DNA of 63,762 bases, filler included, from Pelomyxa schiedti (lineage: Eukaryota > Protista > Evosea): NCBI GenBank assembly GCA_020536535.1. It is 14 parts of 14 records of this genome, joined end to end, with 100 filler letters (N's around TTAATTAATTAA, not from the genome) between each part and the next. Parts side by side here need not be neighbours in the genome. Positions count along the whole stretch, not along the records: positions 1 to 11,143 come from JAHLWZ010000198.1; 13 more parts are not named here. The stretch is one strand, 5' to 3'. A model generated the notes under the pieces. It was given only the letters and a program-made list of their open reading frames with translations. It was not told where the DNA came from and made no database searches. The position numbers and the translations under genes are program-made. Below are positions 1 to 11,143 of this stretch, piece by piece. Position 1 is the stretch's first letter. The number at the start of each line of letters is the position of its first letter.

Positions 1-61
1 CCAACCAAAAACCAAGTTGCCGGATTAGCGACACACACCAACCCACAAAGAAAATAAAAGA

Positions 62-1705
62 GTGAGGGGGGCCCGTATTTTTCCGGCTGAACCTGCTCCT
101 GCTCACGACATTCAATTTACTTGGAAAGAAGAGCGTAGCATAATTGTGGAGGAATGGTCTGGAAAGCGCTATCTAAGAACGTGCAGTCCTCTTCAGTTGC
201 TACATCAGATGTTTGAAGCCCAAGTTCACTCCCATCCTCATTCTGAGGCACTTGCCTTTGGGAAAGATGAATCTGGTCCTCACTGGACTTATATGCAAGT
301 GAACACACATGCAGAACAAATAAGCAATCACCTGAGGACAATGGGAGTACACCGGAATTCCGTGGTAGGTGTGAACATTGAGAACAGTGTCGAATATATT
401 TTTGCTTTTTTGGGTATACTCAAAGCTGGCGGTGCTTTTATGCCCCTTTCCAGTCGTTGGCCACAAGATAGAATACAAACTATCATTAATACTGCCCATT
501 GTTCGATCATTCTCTGTACTTCAAATACCCCTTCTTTTTACAATTCACTTGGTTGCTCTCTAGTCTATTTACCTCTTGCTAGTAATTTGGGAACTGTAGC
601 TTCTACCTGCTACGACATTCCATGTGGACATGATTTAGCTTATGTGATCTGTACATCTGGCAGTACTGGAACACCAAAGCTCGTTGGTGTTACTCATGCT
701 GGTGCTGCAAACGTAGTGGAGTGTTTGGCCAATGGTCACGATTACTGCCACTCCCGTGTGGTGCAATCCTACAGTACTGTGTTTGATTCCTCTGTGGCAT
801 CTATATTCTCCCCACTATCCTTTGGGGGGCTTCTTGTCATACCTCCAGTGGACGTTAACATGGATGTCAAACTGCTTGAGAGTATGCTAAACACACACCG
901 AATCACTCACACGTCGTTTGTTCCCTCTGTTTTGAGTGAATTCTGTCAGCAATGCAAGTTTCCGGATACAGTTTGTCTTGTTGAAGTTGGAGGAGAGGCT
1001 TTGACACGTTACCACCTGAAAAAAATTGCTGCCGCTTCCAACCCTGCAAGGCTTGACAAAATTATTGTGTCCAATAGCTATGGACCCACAGAAGTCACTA
1101 TAGCATGCTCGGAGTATCGGGGTACTCTACGACAGCTTCTTCGAAGCCCTGCAACTGAAGTGCCAATTGGAAAGCCCAGTTACACACACACTTGCTTTGT
1201 TCTAGATCCAGATATGCACATTGTTCCTATTGGACTCCCAGGTGAACTGTGGGTTGGCGGACCCTACCTTGCTCAAGGTTACATTAGCAATCCAGCAGAA
1301 ACAGCAAAACAGTATCTTCCAAATCCGTTTGGGGAAGGTAGATTGTATAAAACAGGCGACTTAGTGCGATGGCTTCCTTCTGGAAATATGATTTTTCTAG
1401 GACGTGCTGACTCACAAGTTAAACTCAATGGTCTGCGCATCGAACTTGCGGAGATAGAGTCAGTGGCTCGAGAATGTCCTGGAGTTCAGGAAGTTTTTCT
1501 GGCCGTGAGAAACTCGCAGCTTGTATGTTATGTAACTTCAAACCAAACTGGTGTAGCTTCTAATTTGCAAAAACTGTTTGGCACCAAATTGCTGCAGTAC
1601 ATGCTTCCAAGACATATTATAGTGCTTGACCATTTTCCCCTTACTGTAGGTGGAAAACTTAACGCCAAAGCTCTTCCTGACCCCTTAAATAACGTGGCTC
1701 ATTGA
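62..1705 (+). CDS. NRPS adenylation (A) domain, intronless; true start uncertain
   Basis: Core motifs A3 LAYVICTSGSTGTPK, A4 FDSSV, A5 NSYGPTE, A6 GELWVGGPYLAQGY, A7 YKTGDL, A8 GRADSQVKLNGLRIE, A10 GGKLN; N-terminal EERSIIVEEW resembles a C-A linker remnant. Confidence 0.95.
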   Translation: MRGARIFPAEPAPAHDIQFTWKEERSIIVEEWSGKRYLRTCSPLQLLHQMFEAQVHSHPHSEALAFGKDESGPHWTYMQVNTHAEQISNHLRTMGVHRNSVVGVNIENSVEYIFAFLGILKAGGAFMPLSSRWPQDRIQTIINTAHCSIILCTSNTPSFYNSLGCSLVYLPLASNLGTVASTCYDIPCGHDLAYVICTSGSTGTPKLVGVTHAGAANVVECLANGHDYCHSRVVQSYSTVFDSSVASIFSPLSFGGLLVIPPVDVNMDVKLLESMLNTHRITHTSFVPSVLSEFCQQCKFPDTVCLVEVGGEALTRYHLKKIAAASNPARLDKIIVSNSYGPTEVTIACSEYRGTLRQLLRSPATEVPIGKPSYTHTCFVLDPDMHIVPIGLPGELWVGGPYLAQGYISNPAETAKQYLPNPFGEGRLYKTGDLVRWLPSGNMIFLGRADSQVKLNGLRIELAEIESVARECPGVQEVFLAVRNSQLVCYVTSNQTGVASNLQKLFGTKLLQYMLPRHIIVLDHFPLTVGGKLNAKALPDPLNNVAH

Positions 1706-2709
1706 AGTTTGGGAAGTCTTCCAGCTTCTTCGCTATGGGAGGTCATTCATTGCTTGCTGTATCACTTGCATGGACCATCAGCAAGGAGTTCAACCTTGAC
1801 GACTTCCCTGTTCAACTTGTTTTTGAGCATTTCACACTTAAGGATATGGCTTCCTGCATCGAGCTGAGGAAAACCACTTGTACGAGTTTCTCAGAGAGGG
1901 GCCCCTCATCTCAGACAAAACTTCCGCACATTGTTTGCCTGCGCGGGGCAATGACTATTTACTTTAAGAGGATACGACAAGAGCTTGCAAAAATTGCAGA
2001 TGTTGAGGTTGCCAAGTATTCAAAAGACATTAAAAGTATTGAAGACTGTACAGAAGCAATATTTCAGGGACTGGAAAATAAAGCTATTGACATTTTAGTT
2101 GGATATTGTGCTGGTGGCTTTTTTGCATTTGCACTTGCCAAGCTTCTTGTTGCCTCCGGAAACATGCCAAAAGTGATGATACTCATTGACCCAGATAGGA
2201 ACATGGACGGAGATGACAGCATAAACCAGGACAAAATCGACTTTTTTTCCTACTGTGCCTGCTCCAAGTGCAACGTAAAGCAGTGTTATATCTCACTAGC
2301 GAAGGTACTGCACATTTCCCTTGGCGAAGGTGAAGATGCCCAGAGTCTTTCCGTGCAAAACAGGATGCTTACGGCATTGGAATCCCTTCCCGAGGAGCGG
2401 TACATCCCTACTCTCTTGGAAGCTACTGGAGACTCAATTGAGAACAAAGACACGTTGGGGGAGATATTCCAGAGTTTCTGCGGTGTGTCCAGAGCATTGG
2501 TTAGGTACAATCCCAGTTTCACTAGGGTGTTGGCTGGTAAGATTATACTGTTGCATGCTTCGGACTATCCACTGGAATATGTATCTTGGTGGGACCAGTA
2601 CCTGGTTAAGCAGAACATTTTCTTCCAGGAGTCACACCACCACGGTATTGTAGAATACAACAAGACAGCACTACTCATACAGGAATGCCTAGAATCTATT
2701 CAAAATTGA
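1702..2709 (+). CDS. NRPS thiolation (PCP) + thioesterase domains, out of frame with the A domain
   Basis: FFAMGGHSLL phosphopantetheine site; alpha/beta-hydrolase elbow LVGYCAGG (Cys in place of Ser), LIDP acid, C-terminal HHHGIV His. Confidence 0.88.
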   Translation: MKFGKSSSFFAMGGHSLLAVSLAWTISKEFNLDDFPVQLVFEHFTLKDMASCIELRKTTCTSFSERGPSSQTKLPHIVCLRGAMTIYFKRIRQELAKIADVEVAKYSKDIKSIEDCTEAIFQGLENKAIDILVGYCAGGFFAFALAKLLVASGNMPKVMILIDPDRNMDGDDSINQDKIDFFSYCACSKCNVKQCYISLAKVLHISLGEGEDAQSLSVQNRMLTALESLPEERYIPTLLEATGDSIENKDTLGEIFQSFCGVSRALVRYNPSFTRVLAGKIILLHASDYPLEYVSWWDQYLVKQNIFFQESHHHGIVEYNKTALLIQECLESIQN

Positions 2710-3678
2710 AACTATTATACAAATAAACTGTTCTGTACTCTTCAAGGTTTTTTGAGTTTGGGTGTTTCAAGAATGATGCATCTTTCTTCCACATGGGAAG
2801 TACCACAGTTAGGCAGAAACGAGGCTCGTTCGGGGAAAAAAAAAAACAGAAGAAAACCTCAATGGTGCCACCCAGGAGATTTTTGAGCTTGGTTAAATCG
2901 CCAGCATTGATGCTGTGAAGTTGTAAATCGTCAATTTAATGATGCCCTTGTTGGCTCTCTTATCCTTCGTCATCTGCCTCGGCTGCAGTGGCCATCATGT
3001 TGATCATCTAAAGTTCTATTTCTATCCATACCGCTAACAATTGAATCGCTTTTTCTTTCCGTCGATCCGGTTCTAAACATTTTTTTTCCTTATCCTTCGG
3101 AACAGATTCCAGGAAAAAGTACAATCTGTTGCGTTGTTGACAACAAAAGTACGATTTTTGGTGGTGTCGACAAAAAAAAGGAAATTAGAGTTATTTGACC
3201 CCCAATATTGTAAGATTGATCACGTTGGCACCGACATCAAGGATCGGGCTGAGACAGCAGCGAAATCCACGACGGCGTCACCGAACTACGTTAGCCGCAG
3301 AACACCGCACCACCGCACGAGAAAAGTCACGCACTCTTAACCAAAATTGTTTAATTGTGGCCAAAGTCAAATAGAAAAACATTATTCATCTTGCTTGTTT
3401 CTAACCGTTAGAGCGGGATGGATAAAACAATGTATTTTGAAACGGGAAACTGTTAGACCTAATAGTCAATTCGTATTTTTTATGGTGTGTTTTTGTGTTA
3501 TACCTAGTTGTAGCACTGGGTTGTTGGATAATTTTGAAAATATGTTTTTTGTATACAACATGTTAGAGTTTTGTGTTGTATTGGGACTTTTTCTATGGTG
3601 CCATAAATTGTTGTGGCAATACTTTTGAAAGGTTATTTCAACAACCATGCTTAAAGCACAGTAGAAGGTGTGTTGTAA

Positions 3679-3780
3679 CAACACCTTCTTCTCTTCTCTG
3701 CCAGACACAAGCACTTGCTTGTGTTTCTGTTGGTTGTTTTATGGGAAAAGTACAATCTGTCCAGTGGTGACCGGTAAAAC
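3679..3780. repeat. Dispersed repeat, inverted homologue at ~52140-52212
   Basis: CTTCTCTTCTCTGCCAGACACAAGCACTTGC and CAATCTGTCCAGTGGT occur as reverse complements on another contig. Confidence 0.7.
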
Positions 3781-4429
3781 TCAGATTTATCTGCTGAAAT
3801 TGACCGGTTACCACCAACTTTTGTATTTTCAACCTTCCTCAGACTCAGTTTTGAATGGGAACCAGGGGAAACCTTGACCACAACCACAAGCTACTGATTG
3901 GCCCCTGGTTGCCAGGAGTGTGAGGTTGGGACACCAAGAAAATGAATTTTGATACGATTTTCGGCACACTTAGTTTGACCCCCAATTTTGTTCGAGATTC
4001 ACAGGAAAGACCAAAATGGGCTCTGTTACCAGTGCAAGTCAGATGCATGCCGCACACTGCTGACGTAATCCCTCCTTCGACTTCCTCTGAGCTCTCACAA
4101 CTTTTTCGTAGGTGTCATGCCATGCTTTCCATTGGAGACAAAGCATAAGTGAAGGGTAAAAGTGTCTACCTCACTGACAGGGACCTTATTGAAGTGAAGC
4201 CCAATACAGCCTCTAATTCTGAACACGGTTCGGGTGATATTTTCCACCTCTCATTCATTTCTCACAATCAACAAACAGGGCAGATATACCGGTTCGTATT
4301 CAGAGCTTTCCAGAATAAAGAAGGTGTCTTTGAGGACAACAGGTGTGATCCAGTGCGATCTGTTGGAATGAGCAACCCATTGGATGGTATGTTTGCACAC
4401 CAAGGAAATATTCTTTTCTTTTAACTACT

Positions 4430-5560
4430 TGCTCAAGTGGAGAAATCAGTGATGTGTGGCCAACAACAGACAGCAAAGGCAACTCTTTTGCCACTAAAGT
4501 AAAGCTGTTGAGAATTCCCTAATGGCTAACCTCAAACAAGGTCATCTCACTTCCGAAGTATGCTCATTACATCCAAAGTCACATTGAAGAGCACACCAAT
4601 TCCACCTTGCAAGCAAAAGCAGGATCCATATTGCAAAAGAGAGCTGAATCTACCATGACAGCAAATAATTCCACTTCACAAGAGAATGTCACCCACAGAG
4701 CAAACGATTATCCACATTATCTCAATGAGTCAGAAACACTCCACAAGTAAATAGAAAAATTCACTGCAGGCTCAATGGTTGCCAGACAATACCTCGGTTC
4801 ACTACTGATTTCCATCCAGAAGCAGAAGCATCCTATTACATAGTAATGGAGAAGTAATGTTCAATGTGTCATACAGCTCAATGAAAAAAAAAAAAAGGTT
4901 CCTAGGAAACAACTGGAATGTTTGGTGGTCAATGAAAAGGTGGCTTTCACTGAAACGCAGATGGGCAGAATACTGTGGGATGTGCTCGAGGCATTATCGT
5001 GTTTGGAACACCATGGCACCGTAACGTTCACATAAGCCATAATTTATCTTCACTTCCAATTGGAACAACTAATATTCCTTTTTTCCCACACAGCCATCAA
5101 ACGTCATTGTTGACTGCCTCCCCAATTGCCCAAAAGCACACTTGGTTGGCTTTGGTCATGCAATTCGATTTTCGAAGGTTCATAAAGCAGTTCCCTGTGG
5201 CACAAAAGGCTTCATGGCTCCTGAGCTGGATATAAGCTACAGTGAGCCCTCGGAAAAACAGGGTGACCTGTGATGTGTGGGGGGTGGGATCACTTCTCTT
5301 CTTCATGTGTTTAAAAGCAATTTCCCATTATTTGAAGAATAAAAATCGATATAGGATAACAGGATCACCCCCAAGATATGCCTCTCCAATATTAGAGGGA
5401 CTTTCTGGTTTCTCGAGAATGTGAATTTCCCTTTATTTATTTCTTTTTTTTTTCCCACTCAATGCCACAAGGTAATTTACTGCTGGCAGAGACTCTAGTT
5501 CTGGACCCAAATGCCAGGATCTCTGTCAGCACGGCAAGGAACAGCTTATGGTTTGAGAAG
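4430..5560 (+). pseudogene. Decayed intron-containing Ser/Thr protein kinase
   Basis: Subdomains in order across frames: SGEISDVW..DSKGNSFATK, SYYIVME, LWDVLEALSCLE, HRNV, PSNVIV, LVGFG (for DFG), GTKGFMAPE, CDVWGVG, LDPNARIS..WF; stops and frameshifts. Confidence 0.75.
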
Positions 5561-5769
5561 CTTTTCCAGCAAAATACAGAATACACAGGAGTTAAGCAGG
5601 GGGTTAAGCCCACACGTTGGGGCATTTATTACGAACTTTTTATACTGGGAACGACAGAGGGGGTTGAGGGGGATTGGTGGTGTAGGTGTCTGCTATGGTG
5701 TTGTGTTGGGTTATTTTTTTGGTTTGCGCGATGCTTTGTTTGTTTTGGATGCTTCGTTTGTTTTGGTCA

Positions 5770-6640
5770 ATGCTCCCCAGCCAAACCCAAAGTGTCAGCT
5801 TATGCAGATGATATCTGCACTGCCTGGAGGAACCTCAAGGACCTCGTTGAAAATTAGAGGGGAGAGTGGACAGCCTTGCCGCACTCCCCTCCTCAGTGGG
5901 ATGTGGATGCCAGAAGGTAGGTGTGCTTCAGTGTCTTGCATAAGGTGCGTAATAACGTTAGTCCAAGACTGGGGCATTCCAACATGTCCCAGGATGTGGA
6001 TTATGGTGTTCCTATCCAAATTGTCATAGGCCTTTGAAAAGTCAGTGAAGAGGAATTGGGCTGCTACATTGTGGTTTTTGAGTGTGTAGAAGGCGTTGGC
6101 TACTGCTGTGATGTTATCATCAATGAGCCGGCCTTCAAAAAACCCATTCTGGTTTGGGTGGCACAGCTGGGCGATAAGAGGGTTGAGAAGGTAGGCCATT
6201 GTTTTCGTTATGATGTGGTTGTCAGTCTCAAGTACATGAATGCACCTGTGTACTTTGGAACATTGATGTCACCTGCAGCACAGCAGATGTATCTCTTCTC
6301 CACCAAGTTTTCTACATGTAGAACCTTATCATGCAAGTCATAGCACACCCACCACTGGTGATTGGCCGTGTGCCGAGTGTAAGAATGCGTGCCTTGATGC
6401 AGGATTTCTTTCCTTCCGGTCAGTGCATCAATCAACAAATACCGTGCACGGGAGTGACTGAGAAGCTCCTTCTTGACAAAGATAATATGTGATGGGTCAG
6501 CAGAAGTTGCCTTGCAGCACTGTATGTGCTTGACATAGACCTCGCGTGGCTCAGCAGATACACCCAGAGTGAGCGGTGAAACACCAAAGTGGAACACACG
6601 GAACTTTGGGGCAGTGACACACACAGCAAAGAACGGCAAG
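5770..6640 (-). mobile_element. Non-LTR (L1/Tx1-like, APE+RT) retrotransposon remnant
   Basis: Minus strand: AGDIN (APE GDFN-like) then HPNQNGF..GRLIDDNI, DFSKAYD, GVRQGCPLSPLIFN; SAYADDI lies on the plus strand at ~5795-5817. Confidence 0.88.
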
Positions 6641-6743
6641 GGGGCTGCGTAGACGCGAGTGCTGTGTGGAGTGCTGTCACTGCCGTCGGCGGGCCGTTCT
6701 GGTCAGTTGATTATTTTTCCAGCCAACTGGACCCTGGGAGATT

Positions 6744-8027
6744 CAGTGCTCCCTCGGTTAACCATACCAAGTTAAAACCCAGTTAACAGTTAACCAGGAA
6801 CCCAACCCAGTTAAACAAACCCTTAACAAAAATTTTCTGAGAAAAATCACTTCGGTGTTTGTGTAAGTACTGGTAGTGTGTCAAAACGAGGACCTGCTGC
6901 AACGTCTGAAGTCAAGCAATATTTCCAACAGACCACTGGTGGTTGGGAGTGCAGTTATCGAGCTGACCCCTCTGCCTCAAAGTGTAAACACAAGCCATTT
7001 GCCTTGAGTGCAGGCACTTCTACTCTTGGGTACTGTTTTAGTGTGGCAGGGTGAACTATGTGGGAAAGGAGGCCCCAGGAAGAGGGAAAAGGAGCGCTAG
7101 TCAATTATTTACTAACCGGCAATAGTTACCACTTGGAAAGAGCACATAAATTTGTCAAAAAGTCCCAACAACCAACACCAACAGCAACACAAACAATCGA
7201 CAAGTATGTCCAAGCAGTTCTTGCTGATAGGATACCCGGACTTAGCAAAAATCAACTTGATGTTGTTTTCCCTTTTCCCACCAACATCCTTATGCAGCAC
7301 AGGTAGCTTTAGCATTTGCCCTGCTTGGACTTCCCTTTTCCATGCTCTCTTCCCCTTATTTCCGTCGTATCCTGAGCCCCGAGAAGATTTATGGGGCATC
7401 ACCTGAAAAGGTTAGTAAATACTAATATCATGTATGGAGGATGTTAAAATCGAAAAGATTCATGCTTGGATTAATCCATGCATTGGCTTCGGAAAAGCCT
7501 CACTGAGTTTGTGGCAGTCATGAAGCTGTGGATTAGTTGCAGAGAAGTACCCCCAATGGATGAAGCGTGGTCTGCTACCAGTATCTAGCAAGTTACCTCG
7601 TGCTGAACTTACAAGACTGATCCAATACAACTTGGGTGTGCAAAGACTTGTCTCACTTGCTCAAACTACTGGCTGGCATCTTTGGCTATTTCTCCATTCC
7701 TTTCAGAATTAGCTATATTGCTTTGTGGTGTGAGAGGGTCTTCTCCTGGGAAGGTTATGTGCACAACTCCTACCGCAATGCTCTTGACTGTGCTCTGACA
7801 GAGAAGCTTGTCTTCATACACTACAACTTTGAGAAAATTTTTAATTACAAGCCACTCCCTCAAGCACCACCACCTGCAACACAATAGCTGGACAATGAGG
7901 AATAACACATTTTTTTTTTCACAGAAAACCCCATTACCAAGTTAAAAAACCCCAGTTAACAGTTAACCCAGTTAAAGGTTAAGGAAACTTGGTACCAAGT
8001 TAAAGGTTTTAACTGGGTAGAGCACTG
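6744..8027 (+). mobile_element. Internally deleted, non-autonomous hAT DNA transposon
   Basis: TIR CAGTGCTC (6744) / GAGCACTG (8020-8027); many subterminal CCA(A)GTTAA repeats at both ends; hATC dimerisation motif CERVFS..VH..YRNAL....EKLVFIHYN at ~7730-7830; no 8-bp TSD visible. Confidence 0.8.
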
Positions 8028-8410
8028 TTCAGGCTACACCACAACCAGAATGATACTTCCAGTCTGTTGATTTTTTTCAGACAATGGTACAAGATGTTCC
8101 TGTAGTGCTCTCATTTGTGTCTCGCCACACACTCATCAGAGCGGATGTCGTTCTTGTGACTCCAACGGAACCCCGCACCTATGACACTGTTTAAACGGTT
8201 TAAAACACTTTCGGAATCGCATTCAAAAGCGTTTCAAAACGGATTCAAACCTGGTTTACACCGTTTTGGAATCCCCTTTGTTGGATGCCAAGGAAACATG
8301 TTCCTAAGAATCAGCTATTGGTGGTTCAAATAAAAGGTTTCCAATGAAAAAATGAGGCATAAAGCGTGTTTTTATTTCCAAACAAGAAAACAAAACCAAA
8401 GCTGCCAGAG

Positions 8411-9900
8411 ATGAGCAACACTAGTAGACCAACCAGTAGAACAAAGCGGCCACGGACAGCAGTTACAAAACCACAGGGGAAGCTGTACGCTTGCAGTAAA
8501 TGTGGTGCATTTTGTGGTCATGTTATGGGTCCTAAATCAACTTAAACAGTATTTTTCATGGGCAGAAAAGCTCCCCAGGTAATCATTCTTATTTCTTCCA
8601 CTCGAACTTAGTAGATGACAGGGACCTGTTTTTAGTAAATGTAAAAGAAACATTGGTAGAATATGGGCATCTGAAGTCTCTTGTGGAGATCGCCATCAAT
8701 GTACCATTAGGAGAGCAATGGACTCCTGGGGGTCTTGATGACATATCAATCCAGTGGGTACAGAAATTCCTTGGCAGTACAGGTAGTGCTTACTTACTCT
8801 TTTCAGCTTTTAGTGTAAAAATAAAATTAAGGACTGCTATATGTAAAACTGTTAGCACAAGGAGTTCAACCTGGGCAAACCTGGGCGGAAGTGTGGAATA
8901 AGGCAGCTGACAAAAAGATTGAAGAAGGTGCCCAAAGTCAAGCTGCATCCAAGTGTGACAGCATTCCAGATTTTCTAGATCACCTTGAACTTCAAGCAGG
9001 TGACCATCCCCCAAAAGGTAGGCATTTTGCTTGGCAAGCTCCTTTGGTTCAAGCAGCTTCATCTGCCTTCAGTACACCATTTCATAGTGAACCACAGATG
9101 TTCTGTTTGCCAACACACCCTGAGTTTCAACGATTATTTCTTGATCTTATGGGTCAATCGATAATGTGGTGGAATGCAGAAGGAAAGGAACTGGCAAACC
9201 TTCACACCATTCCAACAATCGCAATCCCATTTCCAAGGCTCAGGAATCTACAAATGTCAGTAAACAGGTTTCCGTTATTATTATTATTATTATTTTTACA
9301 CTGAATAGTGAGATTCAAAGCTCTAGTAACTCAGCAGATTTGCCTCCATCATTGCATTCCCCTCCCAACTTCACTTCTGATCCGGCAATCATCGCTTCTG
9401 GTCTGGCAATTATCGCTTCTGGTCCAGCAATCAACACAAGCACAACCCCTAGCTCCAATGCTAATAATGTCAATACTCTGCCCACCAGTACTTCTTGCAC
9501 TACAGCAAATAGTCACAGGTAACTTTAACTATTGTGATTACACAAAATAAAGTCACTTTAGTACCTCAAATGCTGTTGATTCAAGTCCTCAAATGTCACC
9601 TCAACCAGTTTCTGGCACACCAGCAAATCTAGCTCAAGTCACACACTTGTTGGAACATATATTGTCTGCTCCCAATGTATCAAGCATGCTTCTTAGCGTT
9701 CTGCAGCAAACTAAGAACACAAACTCATAAAAAAGTTACATGTCACCTCTTTTGTTTTTTTCACAGCCAAGTAAGTCCCACACCATGCAAAGAATGGTGG
9801 GAAAGCCTGGCATTTTGTAAGCATTCAAAAAGATCAGGAAGCTCTAGACAACGAAAGGCACCATGTTTCCCTGGATTAATAAATACAAAAAATTGAAAGA
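8411..9900 (+). CDS. Hypothetical multi-exon protein (CxxC near N-terminus, S/P/T-rich middle), possibly degraded
   Basis: Chain of short ORFs separated by GT..AG introns; YACSKCG. Confidence 0.35.
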
Positions 9901-9998
9901 AAGTGGCAAACCTGATAAGAGCTCTAAGTGAAGATGGGCTGCCTTAGCAGCTACAACATCCCAAAATTTTTCAATCAAATTTAGGTCAGGGGATTGTG
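9900..9998 (-). mobile_element. Tc1/mariner/IS630-like DDE transposase 3-prime fragment (second copy 11045-11143)
   Basis: QSPDLNLIEKFWDVV matches the SPDLNPIENLW catalytic-E motif; cut by gap. Confidence 0.7.
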
Positions 9999-10098
9999 NN
10001 NNNNNNNNNNNNNNNNNNNNNNNNNNNNNNNNNNNNNNNNNNNNNNNNNNNNNNNNNNNNNNNNNNNNNNNNNNNNNNNNNNNNNNNNNNNNNNNNNN

Positions 10099-11143
10099 AT
10101 CCAAGTGTGACAGCATTCCAGATTTTCTAGATCACCTTGAACTTCAAGCAGGTGACCATCCCCCAAAAGGTAGGCATTTTGCTTGGCAAGCTCCTTTGGT
10201 TCAAGCAGCTTCATCTGCCATCAGTACACCATTTCATAGTGAACCACAGATGTTCTGTTTGCCAACACACCCTGAGTTTCAACGATTATTTCTCGATCTT
10301 ATGGGTCAATCGATAATGTGGTGGAATGCAGAAGGAACTGGCAAACCTTCACACCATTCCAACAATCGCAATCCCATTTCCAAGGCTCAGGAATCTACAA
10401 ATGTCAGTAAACAGGTTTCCATTGTTATTATTATTATTATTTTTACACTGAATAGTGAGATTCAAAGCTCTAGTACCTCAGCAGATTTGCCTCCATCATT
10501 GCATTCCCCTCCCAACTTCACTTCTGATCCAGCAATCATCACTTCTGGTCCGGCAATCATCGCTTCTGGTCCGGCAATCAACACAAGCACAACCCCTAGC
10601 TCCAATGCTAATAATGTCAATACTCTGTACCAATACTTCTTGCACTACAGCAAATAGTCACAAGTAACTTTAACTATTGTGATTACTCAAAATAAAGTCA
10701 CTTTAGTACCTCAAATGCTTTTGATTTAAGTCCTCAAATGTCACCTCAACCAGTTTCTGGCACACCAGCAAATCTAGCTCAAGTCACACACTTGTTGGAA
10801 CATATATTGTCTGCTCCCAATGTATCAAGCATGCTTCTTAGTGTTCTGCAGCAAACTAAGAACACAAACTCATAAAAAAGTTACATGTCACCTCTTTTGT
10901 TTTTTTCACAGCCAAGTAAGTCCCACGCCATGCAAAGAGTGGTGGGAAAGCCTGGCATTTTGTAAGCATTCAATAAGATCAGGAAGCTCTAGACAACGAA
11001 AGGCACCATGTTTCCCTGGATAAATAAATACAAAAAATTGAAAGAAAGTGGCAAACCTGATAAGAGCTCTAAGTGAAGATGGGCTGCCTTAGCAGCTACA
11101 ACATCCCAAAATTTTTCAATCAAATTTAGGTCAGGGGATTGTG
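10099..11143. repeat. Near-identical second copy of 8947-9998 across a 100-N gap (allelic/assembly overlap)
   Basis: Same end point; scattered SNPs and small indels. Confidence 0.9.

Follow-up and report, generated by a model that had tools for sequence, protein, structure and literature searches.

The quinone and furanone synthetases TdiA, AtrA and RalA are 'NRPS-like' enzymes (NRPS, nonribosomal peptide synthetase) made up of an adenylation (A), a carrier (T) and a thioesterase (TE) domain without a condensation (C) domain, and their TE builds the product from two tethered units. They activate aryl alpha-keto acids, with an A domain that lacks Asp235. The same three-domain layout is found at positions 62-2709 of the DNA described here, a window of 63,762 nucleotides from Pelomyxa schiedti (Archamoebae), whose positions 1-11143 are the entire scaffold C198 (11,143 bp) of a single-cell assembly; Asp235, absent from the three synthetases, is kept in the Pelomyxa unit. 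This segment is likely to be one of two paralogs of a nuclear, stand-alone A-T-TE NRPS gene of P. schiedti, old in its lineage and represented on C198 by a null haplotype.

A second set of related systems is defined by the TE nucleophile. Natural cysteine thioesterases are rare, and a thioester intermediate alters the balance between cyclisation and hydrolysis. ObiF1 and SulM, in which a TE with a catalytic cysteine is embedded in an NRPS as it is in the C198 unit, make small products (PMC11298585, PMC6668435); their triad aspartate lies after strand beta7 (position II), an arrangement thought to be linked to four-membered-ring formation (PMC11298585). The TE of the fluvirucin polyketide synthase (PKS), FluC (structure 9cfj), is another natural enzyme with a 'rare Cys nucleophile', and the Acinetobacter baumannii protein AB3403 (4zxh, C-A-T-TE) combines such a nucleophile with an aspartate in position I. 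Cysteine TEs themselves are therefore already known; what appears to be new here is a bacterial-type A-T-TE unit that resides in a eukaryote and has a conserved cysteine TE.

Secondary metabolism is essentially undescribed in Archamoebae. The Pelomyxa (PMC8887013) and Mastigamoeba genome papers make no mention of NRPS or PKS genes, and a literature search returned no paper joining NRPS with Archamoebae and none from searches on Amoebozoa or Mastigella. A preceding analysis of the bare sequence (the sequence-only reading) had taken no such pathway to be known in the lineage, which agrees with the literature searched but not with GenBank, where the protein of the second paralog, on contig C983, is already named 'non-ribosomal peptide synthetase [Pelomyxa schiedti]'. 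The C198 locus, this paralog and a hybrid synthetase from Mastigella suggest that anaerobic amoebae encode and transcribe assembly-line enzymes.

Domain content of the A-T-TE unit

Bases 62-2709 of C198 encode the adenylation, carrier and thioesterase domains of an NRPS, split over two reading frames. The features of the unit are:

62..1705, plus strand: adenylation open reading frame (ORF) of 547 codons, with core motifs A1-A10 intact, including Lys517, and a premature TGA that results from a frameshift at its end
209..211, plus strand: first in-frame ATG, coinciding with the start of the Pfam AMP-binding match (ORF residue 51), a possible start codon of the 5'-truncated copy
1691..1694 (about), plus strand: junction at which 91 nt have been deleted; it shows AC microhomology and lacks GT-AG ends, carrier helix 1 is lost and the frame is shifted
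1702..2709, plus strand: ORF for the last two thirds of the carrier and the whole TE, in another frame than the A domain, with the stop codon at 2707-2709; 77% amino acid identity to the paralog
1747..1749, plus strand: GGHS serine, the phosphopantetheine attachment site, located from translation and sequence
2107..2109, plus strand: TE nucleophile Cys (G-Y-C-A-G-G), aligning with the Cys of FluC and the Ser of PKS and surfactin (Srf) TEs
2188..2190, plus strand: putative triad Asp at +27 from the Cys (position I, following strand beta6), with the preceding strand predicted in the structural model
2635..2637, plus strand: putative triad His, an invariant His column in the four-sequence TE alignment

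The A domain matches PF00501 (E 1e-59, 202.6 bits against a cut-off of 29.9), TIGR01733 (345.9 bits against a cut-off of 317.4) and PF13193, and aligns with GrsA (1amu) at E 3e-67, rank 12 among the PDB matches. Its translation contains the motifs TSGSTGTPK (A3), YGPTE (A5), YKTGDL (A7) and GRxDxQVK (A8), the A10 lysine and Asp235 (in FD-S-S), with the numbering of Asp235 and of the specificity code anchored through the motifs on GrsA positions rather than on a 1AMU alignment. The carrier, with the motif F-F-A-M-G-G-H-S, matches PF00550 at E 2e-7 over profile positions 21-67 only (of 67). The TE matches PF00975 over profile positions 11-108 (32.1 bits against a cut-off of 26.4), and language-model features of the T-TE ORF match PF00975 thioesterase clusters at 0.95.

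An intronless A-T-TE module had been proposed from the sequence. The domains and their order stood, with profiles above cut-off; the single intact frame did not, and gave way to two frames, a 91-nt deletion and a 5' truncation. The existing GenBank model on C198 (P0121, 2176-2709) covers only the last 177 TE residues, from M-I-L-I-D-P, and so begins past the nucleophile Cys.

A deleted haplotype and an intact paralog

The P. schiedti assembly (strain SKADARSKE; 52,367,397 bp in 5337 contigs) goes back to seven cells, picked by micromanipulation out of a culture that was polyxenic and polyeukaryotic; their DNA was amplified by multiple displacement amplification (MDA). Illumina and Nanopore reads were combined and then scaffolded on the basis of RNA, and the genome has 7.4 introns per gene (PMC8887013). 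Evidence on alleles and expression comes from contigs assembled from the reads of several runs (among them X1, X3 with DNA contigs, and the RNA-library run X4), aligned to C198.

The 91 nt are absent from C198 relative to both C983 and the 512-bp contig C5220, and encode the A-T linker and carrier helix 1; their loss is the reason why the PF00550 match on C198 begins at profile position 21. A complete four-helix carrier is accordingly lacking in the C198 haplotype, in which positions 1-20 of the profile are absent and the rest is out of frame with the A domain, and is present in C5220 and C983. C5220 represents the C198 locus with the 91 nt retained, has two substitutions over 420 nt (~99.5% identity), and is open for 170 codons across the junction. 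The gapped junction is spanned without gaps by a DNA contig (run X3 record 20, 1466-2192) and by an RNA-library contig (run X4 record 29, 1603-2044), and the non-gapped form of the locus is represented in run X1. An interpretation of the segment as an intron was rejected, given that there are no GT-AG ends in any register, that carrier helix 1 is in frame, and that the gap is found in DNA contigs.

It could be argued that the C198 copy is really intact and functional and that the gap is an artefact of MDA or of assembly: C5220 is the same locus without a gap and fully open, and MDA is known for chimeric junctions at microhomology, of the kind provided by the AC at this junction. This is unlikely, however, in view of the independent occurrence of the gap in a DNA contig of one run and in an RNA-library contig from other cells. 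Two derived amino acids also set the gapped haplotype apart, L instead of P in motif A9 and, in the carrier, W instead of R; at both sites C5220 is identical to C983. On the read contigs, then, the deletion is a real variant, and the assembled C198 haplotype is a null allele of this paralog.

The C198 copy is also incomplete at its 5' end, where the NRPS exon meets a repeat:

1..59, no strand assigned: dispersed repeat at the scaffold start, adjoining the NRPS exon, with matches of 83-97% on C2183, C3173, C2111, C475 and C1223

The copy is homologous to C983 from base 78 onwards only, an in-frame stop (26-28) lies upstream of the A-domain ORF, and there is no counterpart of the N-terminal exon of C983 or of the initial 170 nt of its main exon. 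These features indicate a partial duplicate; no second copy of the C983 N-terminal exon that might represent the missing 5' end was found in the assembly. Given that the ATG at 209-211 falls at the start of the A-domain match, a shorter A-T-TE protein might still be made from the undeleted allele.

The C983 paralog is intact and has two exons. It is 87% identical to the C198 copy (DNA identity of 89% in the A domain and 84% in T-TE). A 949-codon exon, which starts 170 nt further upstream than the homology on C198, is joined by a 76-nt GT..AG intron to an upstream exon that contributes 152 codons. The gene reads without a stop for 1113 codons and retains every catalytic residue of A, T and TE; its TE elbow, GFCAGC, again has a Cys. 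C983 itself is 33 kb long with few ORFs; apart from the NRPS gene it has a single long ORF, of 475 codons, and a PQ-loop match is found in one of the neighbours. No Pfam family is matched at E <= 10 by the first 260 residues of the C983 protein. Exon 1 (L012:3865-4320) and the first 170 nt of exon 2 make up a ~215-residue region before the A domain, which may be a degenerate condensation-domain remnant or a new domain.

At a dS of 0.31 between C198 and C983, the carrier has a dN/dS of 0.15, the A domain one of 0.21 and the TE one of 0.46; in the A-domain tree the branch leading to C198 has roughly double the length of the C983 branch. To judge from the dN/dS and dS values, constraint acted on both copies over most of their history after the duplication, and the C198 allele was broken recently. 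A decay of the entire two-copy family, such that no copy yields a product, would account for the broken C198 allele with its lost 5' part, the long C198 branch, the TE value of 0.46 and the absence of a C domain nearby. It is rather improbable, since C983 is open throughout with its catalytic residues in place, dN/dS is well below 1 in every domain at this dS, and the TE triad is kept out to Mastigella at ~25% identity.

An intact or expressed copy was thus found in more than one form: the C983 gene, the undeleted C5220 fragment and RNA contigs over 171-2044. The undeleted haplotype and the intact paralog evidently coexist in the sample, as far as the contigs indicate. This is a caution for the use of this MDA-based assembly, in which a scaffold can show the null haplotype while the intact one is left in a 512-bp contig.

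Relatives and origin of the gene family

An exhaustive phmmer search with the C983 TE against 1.84 billion representative proteins (E <= 0.001) gave three matches: the 177-residue GenBank model on C198, the Logan contig L017 (SRR15311596_2736085) and a Mastigella eilhardi transcript. A word-indexed search restricted to the TE region returned the query itself only. L017 has a 297-residue TE ORF on a contig that encodes A-T-TE. Over L017:1-2447, a single frame runs through A, T and TE, interrupted only by two in-frame TAG codons that lie past the carrier serine and ahead of the TE, and the ORF ends with TAA; to judge from these codons, L017 would be either a pseudogene or from an organism that reads TAG as sense.

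The closest relative found is the Mastigella eilhardi protein (EukProt EP01105), represented by ORFs of 3671 aa and, as an isoform, 4460 aa (P0123, P0124). Its A-T-TE portion is collinear with the C983 protein (P0001) at 33% identity (E 2e-118), and its TE resembles those of Pelomyxa in that the elbow contains a Cys (AFCAGG), the next strand is followed by Asp-Pro, and there is a C-terminal His. However, the Mastigella A-T-TE ends a PKS-NRPS hybrid with two ketosynthase (KS) domains, acyltransferase (AT), ketoreductase (KR) and carrier domains and a C domain, whereas the Pelomyxa A-T-TE genes have neither C nor KS, and its specificity-code residues differ from the Pelomyxa code.

In A-domain trees, C198, C983, Mastigella and L017 form a clade with a long stem and a support of 100 (FastTree) and 100 SH-aLRT (Shimodaira-Hasegawa-like approximate likelihood ratio test; IQ-TREE). 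A further eight A domains of Pelomyxa, sampled from its multimodular loci (L003-L010), group apart in an exclusive clade of their own. IQ-TREE unites the two Pelomyxa-containing clades against 41 bacterial and fungal sequences (99 SH-aLRT), but FastTree does not; a single old origin of both groups of Pelomyxa A domains is possible on these trees.

Identity to the closest bacterial A domains is 34-37%, and no donor emerged from the comparison. The horizontal acquisition that had been proposed for the gene is therefore plausible only as an old event; a recent transfer is not supported, as the identity to bacteria is low and the unit is also present in Mastigella. Being common to both genera, the A-T-TE(Cys) unit probably predates the split between Pelomyxa and Mastigella. 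It is probably an old resident of the amoeba lineage, ultimately of bacterial type, rather than a recent transfer or a contaminant, and the intact paralog together with the Mastigella relative suggests that the gene family is native to pelomyxid amoebae. As currently sampled by the searches, the Cys-TE clade appears to be small, with members only in pelomyxid amoebae and one Logan contig. A small, sequence-isolated eukaryotic clade with an invariant Cys is a new test case for enzymology and genome mining.

A conserved cysteine nucleophile in the thioesterase

The sequence-only reading had noted a TE elbow GYCAGG with Cys in place of Ser, and this was borne out at codon 2107-2109. The nucleophile position is Cys in the Mastigella and L017 relatives as it is in both Pelomyxa copies: in the four-sequence TE alignment it is invariant (4/4; elbows GFCAGC, GYCAGG, GYCHGC and AFCAGG), the C-terminal His is invariant as well, and three of the clade members have an Asp-Pro (in the motif I-D-P) at +27 from the Cys. 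The relatives found by the exhaustive search and aligned here are thus of the Cys type. To judge from this alignment, the Cys nucleophile is a conserved feature and not a one-off substitution. PF00975 has a Ser in GxSxG, for which all four sequences have a Cys, with the Asp at +27 and the His retained; Cys for Ser is a known rare variant of the family and no ground for exclusion from it.

When the single TE sequence was searched against the PDB with phmmer, nothing significant was found. A profile of the four-sequence clade gave 23 PDB sequences at E <= 1, of which the FluC TE was the best match (E 1.3e-4) and further PKS TEs and the surfactin TE came next; ObiF1 and SulM were not among these 23. 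An AlphaFold model of the TE from the four-sequence alignment has a pLDDT (predicted local distance difference test score) of 55, with a strand-helix order that fits an alpha/beta-hydrolase. Foldseek searches with this model returned TEs or TE-like enzymes at E ~1e-5 and TM-scores of 0.3-0.45, with the Cys-dependent Dieckmann cyclase NcmC at the top, and these matches were used for the fold class only and not for triad geometry.

FluC resembles the amoeba TE in its GYC-G-G elbow and in the spacing of Cys2243 and Asp2270, which at 27 is equal to that of the amoeba TE. Unlike the amoeba TE, it belongs to a bacterial PKS and turns a polyketide into a macrolactam; the alignment between the two is limited to the N-terminal 100 residues, and the distance from Cys to His is 177 residues in the amoeba TE and 124 in FluC, which points to a larger lid in the former. 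The Cys nucleophile and position I Asp of AB3403 are also like those of the amoeba TE; AB3403 matches the A domain at E 7e-57 and is among the Foldseek matches of the TE model. However, it is bacterial, it has a C domain, and its TE has no specific sequence similarity to the amoeba clade.

On the basis of the Cys nucleophile, a TE of the ObiF1/SulM type had been considered, which would release a strained beta-lactone or beta-lactam ring. A short assembly line does imply a small product, as are obafluorin and sulfazecin (PMC11298585). However, the Asp in the amoeba TE is placed by the alignment and the low-confidence model in position I, after beta6, as in FluC and most TEs, whereas it follows beta7 in ObiF1 and SulM; neither protein was recovered by the PDB profile search, and other outcomes are known for Cys TEs, namely macrolactams for FluC and Dieckmann products for NcmC. 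Beta-lactone or beta-lactam chemistry is therefore not supported by the position of the Asp, and release of this type is very unlikely.

Location of the gene in amoeba DNA

The GC content of the A-T-TE gene (0.448) is about equal to that of the remainder of C198 (0.428). Beyond the gene, the scaffold contains the following:

2990..4000, no strand assigned: high-copy repeat directly 3' of the gene, at a depth of 5-20x that of its flanks, with loose ends and strand-switch joints at 2990-3340
4880..5560, plus strand: kinase-like eukaryotic gene, in which an RNA contig (X4 record 30) skips an intron at 5408-5471 (GT..AG)
5795..6196, minus strand: reverse-transcriptase fragment (RVT_1, E 1e-13), a retroelement relic in a multi-copy region (high depth at 5600-6000)

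The sequence-only reading had also proposed that the unit is integrated in eukaryotic DNA, and the C983 intron, the spliced kinase-like transcript, the shared repeats and the Mastigella relative bear this out. The A-T-TE gene, on this sequence and RNA-contig evidence, resides in eukaryotic (amoeba) DNA. For C198 on its own the amoeba location is indirect, through its neighbourhood, and stronger support comes from the C983 intron and the archamoeba relatives. Contigs of RNA run X4 give patchy coverage of 171-2044, with the most upstream contig listed starting at 171, and nothing over 3200-4800; coverage of the gene with a silent 3200-4800 argues against plain carry-over of DNA. Continuity across 2709-5600 was found only in part, in that short-read contigs end at ~2990 within the repeat and the next long contig begins at 3985, leaving the gene unbridged to the kinase-like region.

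The NRPS piece might instead derive from a bacterium, an endosymbiont or another organism of the culture, joined to C198 by chimeric amplification or scaffolding. The culture and the amplification of the DNA would allow this, the 2.6-kb exon is intron-free in an intron-rich genome, the short-read contigs break at 2990, and the best outside matches are bacterial. However, none of the bacterial matches is more than 37% identical, and the TE has relatives only in the Mastigella transcript and in a contig whose features are eukaryote-like. A canonical intron interrupts the paralog, which lies in an ORF-poor scaffold of 33 kb, poly(A)-primed single-cell RNA contigs lie on the gene and none on the adjacent intergenic DNA, and an amoeba repeat adjoins the exon. 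A foreign origin of this kind is accordingly very unlikely, and a nuclear P. schiedti gene family with two paralogs is the preferred reading.

Several points weigh against that reading. The assembly underneath it is of MDA DNA from seven cells of a culture that contained other eukaryotes, and the Mastigella sequence is a transcriptome ORF, so that contaminants are possible in principle in both. The link on C198 between the gene and the eukaryotic part crosses a high-copy repeat that no short-read contig bridges. The RNA evidence consists of contigs from one run, which give no strand, transcript ends or expression level and do not cover 2200-2800. Among the three domains, dN/dS is highest in the TE, the TE triad is read from the alignment, the model being at pLDDT 55, and without a C domain the chemistry of an A-T-TE unit is not fixed.

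Proposed function and biosynthetic context

With the FD, P-S, G-G-E and Y-G-P-T-E motifs as anchors, the specificity code is DSASEGSIAK in both Pelomyxa paralogs, which is the code given earlier by manual alignment, with Asp235 kept. The presence of Asp235 and Lys517 indicates an alpha-amino-acid substrate. The Mastigella and L017 codes differ at several positions, with position 299 acidic there too. This acidic position and the G-S-I tail of the Pelomyxa code recall ornithine-type (basic amino-acid) codes, and the substrate might, as a guess, be a basic amino acid.

The genome was also searched for a phosphopantetheinyl transferase and for C domains. PF01648 is matched above cut-off on C561, where exon translations contain AASDHPPT-like motifs, and this gene, found along with the intact paralog, is a candidate transferase for the carrier. 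The two PF01648 matches on C561:19807-25417 (L015, L016) lie 3.6 kb apart, with near-identical peptides on either side of an N run, and are probably one AASDHPPT-type transferase gene duplicated by scaffolding. PF00668 (Condensation) has no match on C198 or C983 and at least 36 matches elsewhere in the genome.

In the intact form of the protein, the A domain would adenylate an amino acid, which would be loaded onto the pantetheine of the GGHS serine, with the candidate Sfp/AASDHPPT-type transferase on C561 as a possible source of this group. The acyl group would then be handed to the TE cysteine (Cys, Asp at +27 and His), and could leave the acyl-thioenzyme through cyclisation or by passing to a different nucleophile. 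The A-T-TE protein may work alone, or in trans with another synthetase.

The wider repertoire is considerable. NRPS and PKS loci are present on C753, C424, C1181, C151, C123, C259, C318, C508 and C891 (loci L003-L010); A domains lie in open frames of 2400-2545 codons, and KS domains include one in a 2057-codon frame on C508. Four KS genes (C151:82492-83666, C753:20423-21614, C171:61547-62849 and C291:143993-145229) are split at the same protein position (query residue ~245) by gaps of 67-154 nt that look like a shared intron. As C753 and C151 also have multimodular NRPS frames, these intron-like gaps support a eukaryotic location of those frames.

It is conceivable, if doubtful, that pelomyxids have long kept an NRPS/PKS toolkit that includes a deeply divergent, lineage-restricted clade of Cys TEs with an enlarged lid and with a release reaction outside the known TE classes. 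Examples of such a reaction may be the TE-driven self-condensation or cyclisation of a basic amino acid, or a Dieckmann- or lactam-type closure in the Mastigella hybrid. If so, the products would be new metabolites of anaerobic sediment amoebae.

Other features of the scaffold

No inverted repeat that could explain the strand-switch joints at 2990-3300 was found within C198, so these joints must derive from other genomic copies of the repeat. The kinase-like gene had been described as a remnant with an intron. Its splicing is confirmed, and one of its exons matches Pkinase at E 0.002, under the gathering score; its status as a remnant is in doubt. Over 3985-5580 the read contigs are only ~95-97% identical to the scaffold, with many indels of 1-12 nt (e.g. 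at 5219, 5254 and 5278, in all covering runs). The scaffold sequence may be a long-read consensus prone to errors in this stretch, or the contigs may derive from a different haplotype or copy. The frameshift seen in the gene is therefore possibly not real, and the kinase-like gene may be an expressed gene with consensus errors.

Long interspersed nuclear element (LINE) and hAT relics had likewise been reported. The former is upheld by the RVT_1 match, while the hAT match on C198 is weak (E 0.03) and under the cut-off. A weak DDE_3 (Tc1/mariner-type) fragment lies on the minus strand at 9844-9993 (E 0.02). Finally, 8947-9783 and 10099-10928 are two copies in tandem of a ~0.84-kb segment, 97-99% identical and 1.15 kb apart, which flank an N run at ~9990-10098 and are probably a scaffolding or haplotype duplication rather than a true tandem repeat.

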